In this document: positions 38,437 to 42,598 of the stretch, in pieces
Layout: each line of letters begins with the position of its first letter
How positions within the stretch are numbered: the stretch's first letter is position 1
NCBI RefSeq assembly: GCF_006345805.1
Contig: NC_043011.1
Coordinates: 55,440,464-55,504,463 of the forward strand
Reading direction: 5' to 3'
DNA: 64,000 nt
Source: Octopus sinensis
Lineage: Eukaryota
The notes under the pieces: model-generated
Databases searched by the model: none
Told to the model about the DNA's origin: nothing
What the model saw: only the letters and a program-made list of their open reading frames with translations
Program-made: the position numbers and the translations under genes

Positions 38437-38807
38437 TTAAAATGACATTAACCACAATCCAAGAGAAAGAAGGAGGCAATGGCTTAGGGCTGCAATCGAT
38501 ACTGTTGCTGTTCGTATAGTCTTTCCTTCAAGGCAACGTTTATAAATGAAGCCTTTGACTTCGATACAACTGTGAGCAGGGTCGCAACAATGCGATGTGT
38601 GCATACAGTCCCCCCATTCATCAGCACAGCAACGTTGGTCGCTGCCACAGATCAGTCGGGTTACGCAGTGGTAGTCATAAATACAGGCGTAATTCATTGG
38701 ATTCTGAGTGCATCTGTAATTTGTTCCTGGATGTGCTTGGCTGCATTGGTGGCTGCAGCATTCGGAATCGTCGGAACAATCTTCATTCGACCATTTGCAT
38801 TTCGTTC
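38437..38807 (-). CDS. Exon 2 of a secreted/GPI-type tandem knottin (ICK) cysteine-rich protein
   Basis: Acceptor TTTTCTAG; phase-1 exon reads TKCKWSNEDCSDDSECCSHQCSQAHPGTNYRC TQNPMNYACIYDYHCVTRLICGSDQRC CADEWGDCMHTSHCCDPAHSCIEVKGFIYKRC LEGKTIRTATVSIAALSHCLLLSLGLWLMSF*; extends 36 codons upstream of the listed ORF with no stop. Confidence 0.88.
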
Positions 38808-39234
38808 CTAGAAAACCAAAATGGAAGAAGATAAAATATTATTATTATTATTGTTTTAACTTCAGATAAACAACAAAATATATTTCATTTCATGCATTCA
38901 TTGTCAAACTCATTAGCAGTGATGGCAATGGAATATTCTGCAACAAATTTGGGTGTAGGTTAGAAAGATACTTTATAAAGCCAGTATAGGCAGCAGTACG
39001 ACCCAGGAGGCAATGTATGCTGGTACTTAAACCTAGGAATGAACTGGTTTACATGTTATGAAAGTATTACAAAAAAACGGATTAAAAGAGTTGAAAAGAT
39101 AAGCAAGCTAACTCAATCCTTCATTAGTAAGCGTAGACATTTGATAAATCACGCTGTTCTAGGGATTATTTCTAACATAGTCCCAAGGTGACAGATTACA
39201 TTCTTTTTGGTGGAGGCATGCCTGTGAAACGGTT

Positions 39235-39850
39235 ACGCACGCCTTCGTAGACTGTGTGAGGAGTTGAGGGAGTTGATGGCCTTTGACGAACAACTGTTGT
39301 CGGATGCAGAAAGAGTACGACTCTCGTCTGAGTCCATGATAAAGATTCTACCACCTTCCTCTTTCGCCAAAAGAAAAGAAGGTAGCTTTTCTCTGCGTAG
39401 TAACCATACTAAAAGATGTGGCATGGAAGACGCGAGCAAAAGGGATTGCGACAGGTCAATTCATCTCCGGGCGTGGGCTGGTGAATTACTTCGCTACGCA
39501 TCTGTCCAGCAAGATCCGTCTGGAGAGGAGGAGCCTGCCGCAAAGAGCGTTTGGAAAAAGATGGACGTCAGTGGTAAGAAAGATGAGAAAGCCCTAGGCT
39601 GTGCTTGCATAAAAGGAAGGAAAAAGATTACCAAAAGGGATAACCAACCGGCGGGTTAACTCACTAACCCGGACCCAAAACTCATCCGATCATGATTTAT
39701 ATTTATATTTTTAACCCCCATTCACAATATATGTAAATCCATCCTGTTTTTCACACTGTATGTAAGAAGCGAGTTTGTACCCTGAATGTCCCTTGTCTGT
39801 CCTGGTAATGTCCCCTCTATGTAAAACCTTTATAGGTTAATAAAGAAATA
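39235..39850 (+). mobile_element. L1/Tx1-clade LINE 3' end (ORF2 C-terminus plus 3' UTR)
   Basis: Frame not in ORF list reads VVTILKDVAWKTRAKG...GLVNYFATHLSSKIRLERRSLPQRAFGKRW, the K-x-x-W-x-x-R and ER...F..RW pattern of Tx1/L1 ORF2 ends; UTR ends AATAAAGAAATA. Confidence 0.65.
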
Positions 39851-40170
39851 TCTTTTTGGTGGGGGAGAAGGAAGGAGTTAACTGATTAAATCAATCACAA
39901 TAGTTGACTGATGCTTCATTGAATCGACCCTGGAAGGATAAAAGGCAAAAATTAACCAAGGCATGATTTGAAATCAGAACAAAGAGTTATAATTAAATAC
40001 CACAAAGCATTTGTCTGACTCTTTAACAATTCTGACAATTCACAGCCCTTACTCTAGACACGAGAGCCAACAATTTTAAGTGAAGGGACTCCATTAAGAC
40101 TAGTGGCCCCCAGTACTTTCATTGGTTCTTTCTTTTATCAACCTTGGAGATCTGTGAAAAGCAAAGACGA

Positions 40171-40480
40171 TTCTATGGCTGGATTCCTTTCCTAATGCCA
40201 ACCACTCCAAGAGTGTAATGGGTGCTTTTACATGCTTCTAGCATGGGTGCCATTTGCGTGACCCCAGTATCTGCCACAACTACAATTTTATTTGAACTGA
40301 CAGGTCTTCTTCTCTAGCATGACATAATGCCAAAGGTCTTGGTCGTTCGTCATTGCCTCCAGGAGGCCCAACGTATGAAAGATGCCTTTTATGTGACACA
40401 AGCATCAGCCACAACGATTTCACTTGGCTTGATGGGTTTTCTCGAGCACAGCATATCACCAAAGATTCTCGGTCACTAGT
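40171..40480 (-). mobile_element. RTE LINE 3' UTR fragment
   Basis: CTGGATTCCTTTCCTAATGCCAACCACTCC core and downstream UTR. Confidence 0.7.
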
Positions 40481-40836
40481 CATATACATACATATATATA
40501 TATATATATAATCAATTAGCATTGGTGTGAGTCCAGCAACACCTCTGTTCTACCAATACATTCTAGAAAAACCTAAGAGAGTGATGTCAGAATAGAAATT
40601 CCATCTCCACACTGTTGGACAAGTTGTTAAAAGATGTTTAAGAGTGTGAACGTGATCCAAATGAATAGGCTTGCTTCCAATTTGTACATAGAGGCCAAGA
40701 ACTTCAGCTGGGCAAAGACACACTCGGAACTCAGTGTCATTCTGCAACTGCAGGGTTTCTTCATCAACCCTAGGCAACATCACCTTTTGCAGTATTAAAT
40801 GGTATTAATCATATATAAATCAAATCAAAATCAAAT

Positions 40837-41354
40837 TCGATGACTGGCGCAAAGAGCACCATACGAGTGTGATCGTTGACAGAGCGGCTAATCGGCTTCC
40901 GTGCCAGTGGCACTTAAAAGGCACCATTCGAGTGTGATTGTTACCAGTGTTGCCTTACTGGCACTCGAGCCCTGTGCTGGTAGGTTATTAAGAGCACCAT
41001 CCGAGCATGATTGTTGCCAGAGTGGCTATCTGGCCTCCGTGCCAGTGGCACATAAAAGACACCAATTGAGCGTGATCATTACCAGCATCGCCTTACTGGC
41101 ACCTGTGCCGGTGGCATGCGTAAAAGATTCAAGCGAGGTCGTTGCCAGTATTGACTGACTGGCCCTGTGCCGGTAGCACATAAAAAGCACCCACTACACT
41201 CTCGGAGTGGTTGGCGTTAGGAAGGGCATCCAGCTGTAGAAACTCTGCCAGATCAAGATTGAAGCCTGGTACAGCCATCTGGTTCGCCAGCCCTCGGTCA
41301 AACCGTCCAACCCATGCTTGCATGGAAAGCAGACGTTAAATGATGATGATGATG
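40837..41354 (+). mobile_element. RTE LINE 3' UTR with GTGCC-unit array and GAT tail
   Basis: Family core at 41190-41250; tail at 41335-41354. Confidence 0.8.
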
Positions 41355-41494
41355 AAATAATGATGATTTGCATATTTACTCTTCACACCTTCTGCAAAAT
41401 CTGAGTGCAGATATGCTAATTGCTGTTGTACATCACAGGGGAACAGTTTCTCCTTTTCACATCAACCGTGTTCATCATATTCATTTGATTCAGT

Positions 41495-41562
41495 GGTGCA
41501 AAGGATTCTGGGACATTGGTGTTTCGCTACCTTCTGTCTCATCAGCCAGAAGAACCTGCACC
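41495..41562 (-). ncRNA. Type I hammerhead ribozyme with intact catalytic core
   Basis: Minus strand GGTGCAG-GTTC-TTCTGG CTGATGA GACAGAAGGTAGC GAAAC ACCAAT GTC|CCAGAA-TCCT-TTGCACC; stem I 6+7 bp, stem III 3 bp with CCAA loop, weak stem II; predicted cleavage 41512/41511. Confidence 0.75.
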
Positions 41563-41713
41563 TTCAACTCTAAACAAGAGCTGATGGCTTTGTTTATAAT
41601 TTCAGTGAACAAATTGTTTGCTGATTCGTGCTGGTATTTGTCAACAAATAAAAATTTCTTATTTGTAATTGAATTTATCAGAATTTATTAAGAATAAATT
41701 TTTTTTTTTTTTT

Positions 41714-42033
41714 AATCCGCCGGTTACGACGATGAGGGTCCCAGCTGATACGATCAACGGAACAGCTTGCTCGTGAAATTAACGTGCAAATGGCTGAGCA
41801 TTCCACAGACACGTGTACCCTTAACGTAGTTCTCGGGGATAATCAGCGTGACACAGAGAGTGACAAGGCTGACCCTTTGAAGTACAAGTACAACTCATTT
41901 TTGCCAGCTGAGTGGACTGGAGCAACGTGAAATAAAGTGTCTTGCTCAAGGACACAACGCGTCGCCGGGAATCGAACTCACAACCTTACGATCATGAGCC
42001 AAATGCCCTAACCACTAAGCCACGCGCCCTCAC
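41714..42033 (-). mobile_element. tRNA-derived CORE-SINE (OK-like)
   Basis: Head GTGGCTTAGTGGTTAGGG...GAGTTCGATTCC; CORE TCCTTGAGCAAGACACTT; poly(A) end. Confidence 0.8.
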
Positions 42034-42534
42034 TAAGAATAAATACACAAGTCATCATTTCAGATCTTGCTGTTCACAGTGCATAGACAGCTATTTTAAT
42101 TTAACACTGCTTCTACAGATTTTTATTCAGCTCGGCACCTCTTCAATATCAGTGAACACTATTCCTTATTTCCTGTACATCAGAATTGACAATTCTTGTC
42201 TAAATCTATCAAGGCTGAAAATGCATTTTGCATTCCTGATTGATGCTGCTGGAGTGATTTTTGTCTCCTTCCGATATACATTCTGTTTTTTAAAATGGCA
42301 CATCCATAAATAGGTGTTATTTCTGGATGAATAGCACAGTCAATTGCCTTCCAATGATGTATTGCATTAAGTATGATACATAGATAGGTAATACATGCTC
42401 TATGTTCAATGATTAAGCGTTCTCTGTTAAATTCTGCAGCAAAAGAAATTATTATCATTGTCAGTAGGCAGAAATGTCTAATTAATACACAGACAGGCAA
42501 GAAAAATAGATGCGAAAAATGAAGATAAACTTAC

Positions 42535-42598
42535 CAGCTGGAACCTGGAGAATTAAAGCCATGAAGATGGCCAGCTGGAGTAATCTTTGATATATCAT
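42535..42598 (-). CDS. Exon 1 (signal peptide) of the tandem knottin protein
   Basis: ATG at 42598 reads MIYQRLLQLAIFMALILQVPA, then G|GTAAGT donor; phase 1 matches exon 2 (G|GA = Gly); joined CDS 435 nt = 144 aa. Confidence 0.8.

Follow-up and report, generated by a model that had tools for sequence, protein, structure and literature searches.

A two-exon octopus gene encodes a 16-cysteine protein of an old, unnamed molluscan family with a probable membrane tether

We analysed a 64,000-nucleotide stretch of the Octopus sinensis genome (NCBI RefSeq assembly GCF_006345805.1, contig NC_043011.1, forward-strand positions 55,440,464 to 55,504,463; the whole stretch is called the window below, and it is AT-rich eukaryotic DNA with 38% GC) and found on its minus strand a genuine gene with two coding exons, a conclusion that has five independent lines of evidence behind it and lies far beyond chance. 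Its 144-residue product has a predicted signal peptide, an ectodomain with 16 cysteines and an uncharged hydrophobic C-terminal tail, and it belongs to a family that is unnamed and old within Mollusca; we hold the gene model and the family with high confidence. Taken as a whole, the data are best explained by a rigid 16-Cys binding domain that would be tethered to the membrane through a tail resembling a glycosylphosphatidylinositol (GPI) signal and would serve a conserved endogenous partner, a reading that we hold with moderate confidence. The sequence itself is not new, as the gene and its relatives are already in public databases, and the two-exon model recovers existing annotation; for O. 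vulgaris it improves on it. What seems to have gone unrecognised so far is that these proteins form a family and how they are built, namely from an inhibitor cystine knot (ICK)-like module, a 4-Cys hairpin, a second ICK-like module and a lipid or transmembrane tether. No paper on the 16-Cys family, or on GPI-anchored knottins in molluscs, was found in the literature searched.

An earlier reading of this DNA, made from its letters only (the sequence-only reading), had proposed that two exons with a GTAAGT donor and an AG acceptor join in phase into 144 residues. This can be read directly from the window (coordinates in Table 1): exons of 64 and 371 nucleotides, joined in phase via GT/AG, give 435 nucleotides, that is, 144 codons followed by TAA. 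The product consists of MIYQRLLQLAIFMALILQVPA followed by GTKCKW...KRCLEGKTIRTATVSIAALSHCLLLSLGLWLMSF; exon 1 encodes the signal peptide alone and all of the remaining protein comes from exon 2. The list of open reading frames that accompanied the DNA covers the last 86 residues only (38437-38697), as the same reading had pointed out. The closest database protein, UniProt A0A0L8G3G9 of O. bimaculoides, also has 144 residues and is 94% identical over 100% of the query; its automatic name is 'Granulins domain-containing protein'. When ~100 homologues were compared with the window by tblastn, every match fell on exon 2 and the gene was single-copy in the window; A0A0L8G3G9 also matched exon 1 (42592-42530, 90%).

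The exon junction has the same or a similar place in relatives. An orthologue of 144 residues with 63% identity (P0002) is encoded by an uninterrupted 435-nucleotide open reading frame on Logan contigs of 1.0-1.5 kb, which come from assembled sequencing runs and are read as transcripts. Its nucleotide similarity to the window begins at 38809, at most 2 nucleotides from the acceptor, and there too 64 coding nucleotides lie upstream. They encode a signal peptide of equal length (...ITSG/TKCKW), with the junction at the same position of the coding sequence. Judging from the level of identity alone, the source of these transcripts would be a decapodiform cephalopod. The gene of Crassostrea virginica likewise has two coding exons, split at ...VVPG/SLQLCKW, and exon 1 of the Biomphalaria glabrata gene ends at ...LNIA/SPCSW; in both species a phase-1 intron lies 3-5 codons ahead of the first Cys. 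Comparison with the corresponding O. vulgaris chromosome segment (L006, from OX597831.1; 94-97% identity) showed that exon 1 and its donor are intact in that species, with 3 substitutions, all of them synonymous, and with insertions and deletions only in the flanks, where they start within ~20 nucleotides on either side. Over the whole coding sequence the two species differ by 6 synonymous and 3 non-synonymous changes (ratio of non-synonymous to synonymous substitution rates, dN/dS, 0.12).

Word-indexed database searches yielded few relatives. An exhaustive profile hidden Markov model search over 1.84 billion representative proteins returned 45 representatives at E ≤ 1e-3, 37 at E ≤ 1e-10 and 22 at E ≤ 1e-30, with lengths of 90-220 residues. 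All named members are from molluscs: cephalopods (Octopus, including two paralogues in O. bimaculoides), bivalves (Mytilus, Crassostrea, Mactra, Mizuhopecten) and gastropods (Haliotis, Batillaria, Nucella, Babylonia, Biomphalaria, Bulinus, Lymnaea, Physella, Elysia). They are entered as 'uncharacterized', as 'hypothetical' or under automatic names ('Granulins domain-containing', 'Granulin' and one 'WAP domain-containing'), and the Lymnaea member is unnamed. The window protein had no match in Pfam at E ≤ 10, and Pfam holds no model for the family. In an unbootstrapped neighbour-joining tree the members seem to fall into two or more old subfamilies, with both bivalves and gastropods in each.

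Between the signal peptide and the hydrophobic tail the members follow the signature C-x6-C-x5-CC-x3-C-x10-C-x8-C-x5-C-x5-C-x5-CC-x6-C-x5-CC-x5-C-x10-C, which the window protein matches, and the strict 16-Cys pattern fits 84 of the 98 proteins fetched, Cys54 and Cys63 being constantly 8 residues apart. In an alignment of 37 sequences, 15 of the 16 cysteines as well as S40, G49 and L114 are invariant, and C113, N29, R53, W86 and Y110 are nearly so. Loop residues are kept between octopus and bivalves (~42% identity), and the motifs KWSNEGC, ECCS, H(P/E)GT, YxYHCE, CCxxYW, DCCDPxHxC and GFxYK(R/K)CL recur over the same range; the window protein carries the family motifs KWSNEGC, H(P/E)GT, (Y/F)W and GFxYxxCL.

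Some members and one outlier show variations on this plan. The second cephalopod paralogue (P0013, O. bimaculoides A0A0L8FII8, with P0079 and P0025 among transcripts of a relative) has the same 16-Cys domain with an extra Cys beside Cys75; P0079 was present on 65 contigs, suggesting an expression above that of the orthologue of the window gene. Two abalone sequences (P0033 and P0070, isoforms of Haliotis rufescens LOC124111080) have an N-terminal repeat rich in Ser, Thr, Pro and Ala (VSPATSAGGSNTS...) ahead of the 16-Cys domain; the repeat is mucin-like in look and its copy number differs among the isoforms. The sole weak match outside the family (E 1e-5) was P0101, a protein of 319 residues with ~6 tandem ICK-like modules, whose precomputed Pfam domains are a conotoxin family, calcine and UPF0506 and which has the motif ECCS-x2-C in common with module 1.

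Next we consider the cysteine modules and their fold. The ectodomain cysteines are at positions 25, 32, 38, 39, 43 and 54 (module 1), 63, 69, 75 and 81 (module 2) and 82, 89, 95, 96, 102 and 113 (module 3), and a 17th Cys, at 132, lies in the tail. This agrees exactly with the sequence-only reading, which had counted 16 cysteines in this spacing and had placed two C-C-CC-C-C modules of six Cys around a module of four. Residues 25-54 and 82-113 have the knottin C-C-CC-C-C framework, and the lengths of their loops are among those that it permits. The resemblance to toxin frameworks that was drawn from this stands in part. In a search against the PDB the family profile aligned module 1 gapless, with its six Cys in register, to ICK structures of the calcin type (E 0.008-0.04), and module 3 gave weak matches at profile positions 84-113; a PDB search with the single protein gave only one match (E 1.5). 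Among the Pfam knottin families, the best score on module 1 of members was that of Toxin_29 (24.8 bits versus a cut-off of 25), with sub-threshold matches also to Toxin_27 (calcins) and UPF0506 (15.4 versus 23.2), and Toxin_12 scored 16.5 versus 21 on module 3 of one member. Membership in the conotoxin O-superfamily, whose framework the claim had named, was not supported, the Pfam model PF02950 matching 0 of the 37 members at E ≤ 1.

An AlphaFold2 model built from 6 sequences had a mean predicted local distance difference test score (pLDDT) of 51 and was superseded by a run with 37 sequences, which reached 88.6 and ~95 over residues 30-110. The latter model has three beta-hairpins and makes the signal peptide and the tail helical, and the hairpin that carries Cys V and VI of a knottin is predicted by it in modules 1 and 3. 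Foldseek comparison of the model with the PDB gave 75 matches at E ≤ 10, of which the 50 best-ranked were considered; these are mostly knottins, with target-normalised template modelling (TM) scores of 0.6-0.73 and a root-mean-square deviation (rmsd) of ~2 Å over ~35 residues. In the virus structure database BFVD there was no match at E ≤ 0.001, and matches to a pithovirus 'transmembrane protein' were set aside (TM ≤ 0.41, high rmsd). The model, compact and confident as it is, thus predicts a local resemblance of modules 1 and 3 to knottins, and to a true knot topology, which in knottins means disulfides I-IV, II-V and III-VI with the last of these passing through the ring, we give an even chance. 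Covariation between cysteines was uninformative here because all of them are invariant. The two modules may go back to an old internal duplication, with which their weak profile-profile alignment by hhalign (P ~9e-4 over 13 columns, in register at Cys II-IV) is compatible without proving it. The bivalent layout of two knots that the sequence-only reading had suggested is less well supported than another picture. The gap from module 1 to module 2 is fixed at 8 residues, modules 2 and 3 meet at the neighbouring Cys81 and Cys82, and the spacing is invariant in 84 of 98 proteins, all of which speaks for a single rigid 16-Cys unit and against independent knots connected by a flexible linker.

How is this unit attached? 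The N-terminus fits a signal peptide by rule of thumb, as had been claimed (basic R5, a hydrophobic core of 13 residues and V-P-A before the junction, so that V and A occupy -3 and -1), and the N-termini of the relatives are analogous. The uncharged hydrophobic tail was also described correctly: its hydrophobic run spans V124-F144, charged residues (K, R, D, E) are missing beyond R120, and throughout the family the tail varies in sequence and keeps its hydrophobic character. In most members the last Cys is followed by 28-41 residues that start with small ones (SSDAS, NSGNS, NTGNSSNSS, GSSSS, SAG) and finish with a hydrophobic, uncharged segment reaching the C-terminus or its vicinity. A classical GPI-attachment signal consists of small residues (at omega and omega+2), a short spacer and a hydrophobic stretch of ~15-20 residues to the C-terminus, and in proteins with a signal peptide a stretch that runs to the very C-terminus after small residues is typically of this kind. 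Textbook small-residue omega regions are present in the squid-like and bivalve orthologues; the octopus protein, in which G116 is a candidate omega site, has a less typical region (G116-K-T). A different layout, of type-I transmembrane form, occurs in the paralogue clade (A0A0L8FII8 and its squid-like counterparts, P0079 and Babylonia P0072), where a transmembrane segment is followed by 15-26 polar or charged residues (~26 in the cephalopod paralogue). Since the family switches between GPI-like and transmembrane forms, membrane tethering would be the property under selection. We regard membrane tethering as likely and lean towards GPI anchoring as its specific form.

A minority view, to which we still give some weight, is that the tether is a conventional transmembrane segment that crosses the membrane once and leaves next to nothing in the cytosol. 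In a variant of this view the tail would be cut off as a pro-segment, and the ectodomain would be released or secreted to act as a soluble ligand like a growth factor or hormone. The layout of the paralogue clade and the atypical omega region of the octopus protein point this way, whereas the hydrophobic stretch that runs to the very end of the chain and the omega regions of the squid-like and bivalve orthologues favour the GPI anchor.

The sequence-only reading had named a different first exon as the finding that would count against its gene model, and such an exon is indeed annotated in O. vulgaris. The GenBank models CAI9735764.1 (163 residues) and CAI9735765.1 (136 residues) splice a distal first exon (L006 10001-10123 of OX597831.1, ~21 kb upstream) with a valid phase-1 donor, CG/GTAAAT, to the same acceptor. 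In a tblastn comparison with the window this alternative exon gave chance matches only, because its position falls ~1.3 kb past window position 64000. The proximal signal-peptide exon is present at L006 27624-27687, intact, yet it is unannotated in that species. We judged the proximal exon to be better supported. The 136-residue isoform has no signal peptide and the 163-residue isoform a weak one, which makes both implausible as carriers of a 16-Cys domain; the proximal exon differs in O. vulgaris by synonymous substitutions only, it is the one used in the O. bimaculoides annotation, and a short signal-peptide exon occupies the same position in the relative's transcripts and in the oyster and snail genes. 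It is accordingly quite unlikely that the model is wrong for the species in the sense that exon 1 is unused and that transcripts start at the distal exon to give products of 163 or 136 residues. We take the distal exon to be an alternative exon (from an alternative promoter, for instance), a 5′-untranslated exon or an annotation error, and we think it probable that the first exon of the O. vulgaris models is misannotated.

What could a tethered 16-Cys unit do? In the mechanism that we propose, the signal peptide would be cleaved after VPA, leaving a mature ectodomain of ~95 residues that would be held by 8 disulfides as one rigid unit (ICK-like 6-Cys module, 4-Cys beta-hairpin, ICK-like 6-Cys module). 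The hydrophobic tail would then be exchanged in the endoplasmic reticulum, most likely for a GPI anchor near G116, and the ectodomain would be displayed on the outer face of the plasma membrane. There it may bind, stoichiometrically and in cis or in trans, a conserved endogenous partner at the surface or outside the cell (a receptor, a channel or a ligand). As both the loops and the cysteines are under purifying selection, binding of an endogenous partner is the most likely function, ahead of a toxin or antimicrobial role.

Several observations weigh against the membrane-tethered binding domain as we have drawn it. All matches of members to Pfam knottin families lie under the gathering cut-offs, and the best of the Foldseek matches in the PDB has an E-value of 0.15, with none at E ≤ 0.001. 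The exact 144-residue sequence is absent from a collection of 15 billion proteins. To these are added the less typical omega region of the octopus protein and the distal exon of the O. vulgaris models, both described above. Modulation of a channel or receptor in particular is a tentative proposal, which we think improbable on present data. More doubtful still is the larger idea that the family is a natural membrane-tethered double knottin, that is, a knottin-fold counterpart of lynx1 and Sleepless acting as a cell-autonomous channel or receptor modulator, and at the same time the sort of endogenous ICK pool that the secreted ICK peptides of molluscs could have been drawn from.

The C-C-CC-C-C frameworks and the weak matches to ICK entries from spiders, scorpions and cone snails could also be read as marks of a knottin precursor that serves venom, defence or antimicrobial action, or of a protein from which the secreted ICK peptides of venoms descend directly. 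We consider this very unlikely. Venom and antimicrobial peptides conserve little besides their cysteines, whereas here the loops are kept across the split between cephalopods and bivalves, the spacing is fixed and dN/dS is low (the value given above). The family is present in non-venomous, filter-feeding bivalves and in grazing snails; the mature domain starts 3 residues past the predicted cleavage site, which leaves no room for a propeptide; acidic residues outnumber basic ones in the ectodomain (13 D/E versus 8 K/R, counted), making it net acidic; and no member matched the Pfam conotoxin model at E ≤ 1. The granulin-family growth factor suggested by the automatic names of O. bimaculoides, Biomphalaria and Mizuhopecten entries, and by a local HCCDP-x-H-x-C stretch that we take to resemble the granulin HCCP core, is the least credible candidate of all: PF00396 matches 0 of the 37 members at E ≤ 1, the family has 16 Cys with three CC pairs at other spacing compared with a 12-Cys module with four CC pairs, and there is no granulin structure among the 50 best of the 75 Foldseek matches in the PDB.

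Among known systems, the best functional analogy (not homology) would be with the Ly6/uPAR prototoxins such as lynx1 and Drosophila Sleepless/quiver, which are also built from a signal peptide, a small domain rich in disulfides whose fold venom toxins use as well, and a C-terminal GPI signal (a putative one in the octopus protein). These prototoxins are endogenous modulators of channels and receptors at the cell surface (PMC6502960). They differ in having the three-finger fold and 8-10 Cys, and membership in that family was rejected: there was no UPAR_LY6 match in Pfam and no three-finger protein among the 50 best of the 75 Foldseek matches.

The scorpion calcins, the spider families Toxin_12 and Toxin_29 and UPF0506 share the C-C-CC-C-C framework with modules 1 and 3, and module 1 has the exact calcin spacing without gaps. 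In these ICK peptides too a beta-hairpin bears the last two Cys (predicted in our case), and the local TM scores given above refer to this likeness. The octopus modules differ from them in being parts of a 16-Cys unit of constant spacing that carries a probable membrane anchor and in that their loops are conserved rather than hypervariable. The double-knot spider toxins DkTx and Hi1a likewise have two ICK-like modules per chain, and both are among the Foldseek matches, with TM of only 0.31-0.36; they are secreted and have neither a middle 4-Cys module nor an anchor, whereas in the 16-Cys family modules 2 and 3 adjoin through Cys-Cys and the spacing between modules is fixed. Conotoxins and bungarotoxins have reportedly been anchored by GPI in the engineered tethered toxins of Ibanez-Tallon and colleagues, with cell-autonomous channel block as the aim. 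The design would be the same (an ICK or three-finger peptide plus a GPI signal) but is artificial in their case, and the octopus protein would be its natural counterpart only if channel binding held.

By E-value the top Foldseek matches in the PDB were the N-terminal region of Dkk4, colipase and Dkk1, and in principle the C-terminal 10 Cys (63-113) could form a unit of the colipase/Dickkopf/prokineticin type. This candidate was rejected, as TM is ≤ 0.34 with rmsd of 7-15 Å, no member matches Colipase, Dickkopf_N or Prokineticin in Pfam, and the Cys spacing is unlike. The molluscan CRNF proteins (Lymnaea CRNF and Aplysia apCRNF) are also small Cys-rich extracellular proteins. ApCRNF and lyCRNF are secreted, 22% identical and have 11 conserved Cys (PMC3966541). 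Lymnaea and Elysia members of the 16-Cys family are 65% identical and have 16 Cys, and from this difference in divergence and Cys number we judged the two to be different families, CRNF being compared by its published description.

If the architecture is true, this would be a natural protein with knottin-like modules on a lipid anchor. To our knowledge, examples of such tethering have so far come from Ly6/lynx proteins, which have another fold, and from toxins tethered by engineering. As the family is old and under strong constraint, lacks a Pfam model and goes under the wrong name 'granulin' in UniProt, it is a target for the definition of a new domain family, and its annotation can be corrected, including the first exon in O. 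vulgaris. It also offers a route to a conserved molluscan surface interaction and, for studies of toxin evolution, a slowly evolving endogenous ICK-like comparator in the phylum that made conotoxins.

Table 1. Features of the 16-Cys gene and its product (window positions; residues numbered in the 144-residue protein)
Feature	Position	Strand	Details
Coding exon 1	42535..42598	minus	64 nt, ATG...CCAGCTG; start codon 42596-42598; 21-residue signal peptide MIYQRLLQLAIFMALILQVPA plus first base of codon 22
Splice donor GTAAGT	42529..42534	minus	Identical GTAAGT in O. vulgaris
Phase-1 intron, 3727 nt	38808..42534	minus	Interspersed repeats inside, e.g. 40917-41352
Coding exon 2	38437..38807	minus	371 nt; residues 22-144 plus stop codon 38437-38439; acceptor TTTTGGTTTTCTAG
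Module 1, Cys25-Cys54, C-x6-C-x5-CC-x3-C-x10-C, ICK-like	38710..38799	minus	Calcin-type profile alignment; predicted hairpin 43-45/52-54
Module 2, Cys63-Cys81, C-x5-C-x5-C-x5-C, 4-Cys beta-hairpin	38629..38685	minus	Predicted hairpin 73-75/80-83; spacing near-invariant in the family
Module 3, Cys82-Cys113, C-x6-C-x5-CC-x5-C-x10-C, ICK-like	38533..38628	minus	Sub-threshold Toxin_12; predicted hairpin 100-103/111-115
C-terminal 31 residues LEGKTIRTATVSIAALSHCLLLSLGLWLMSF	38440..38532	minus	Short polar spacer (LEGKTIRTAT), then uncharged hydrophobic run to the C-terminus; predicted helix 126-143

The surroundings of the gene were also inspected. A core histone H3 gene (33722-34132, plus strand; intronless, 136 residues, Pfam Histone E 8e-49) lies on the opposite strand ~4.3 kb downstream of the stop codon of the 16-Cys gene, and O. 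vulgaris has the same neighbour (L006 35713-36123). A direct tandem duplication of 3.68 kb with 99.3% identity (51401-55075 and 55075-58757) is single-copy in the O. vulgaris segment; it either arose recently or is an artefact of the assembly. An interspersed repeat of ~380 bp, probably similar to short interspersed nuclear elements, is present in at least 7 copies in both orientations with 85-91% identity (8196-8567, 18623-18993, 43400-43775, 44411-44804, 52396-52781, 56072-56458 and 59740-60120). A second dispersed repeat occurs at 40917-41352, in the intron of the 16-Cys gene, and at 4720-5131, with partial copies near 2216, 5925-6395, 11887, 13770-14240, 14538, 28039 and 59382; its pseudo-open reading frames have the strings SFYSWMPFLTPTTPRV and VLFTCHQH in common and are the source of several long spurious open reading frames in the window. 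Finally, an open reading frame at 48441-48908 (minus strand) matches the endonuclease/exonuclease/phosphatase family with E 0.004 (17.4 bits versus a cut-off of 24.5) and is probably a degraded endonuclease fragment of a long interspersed nuclear element.

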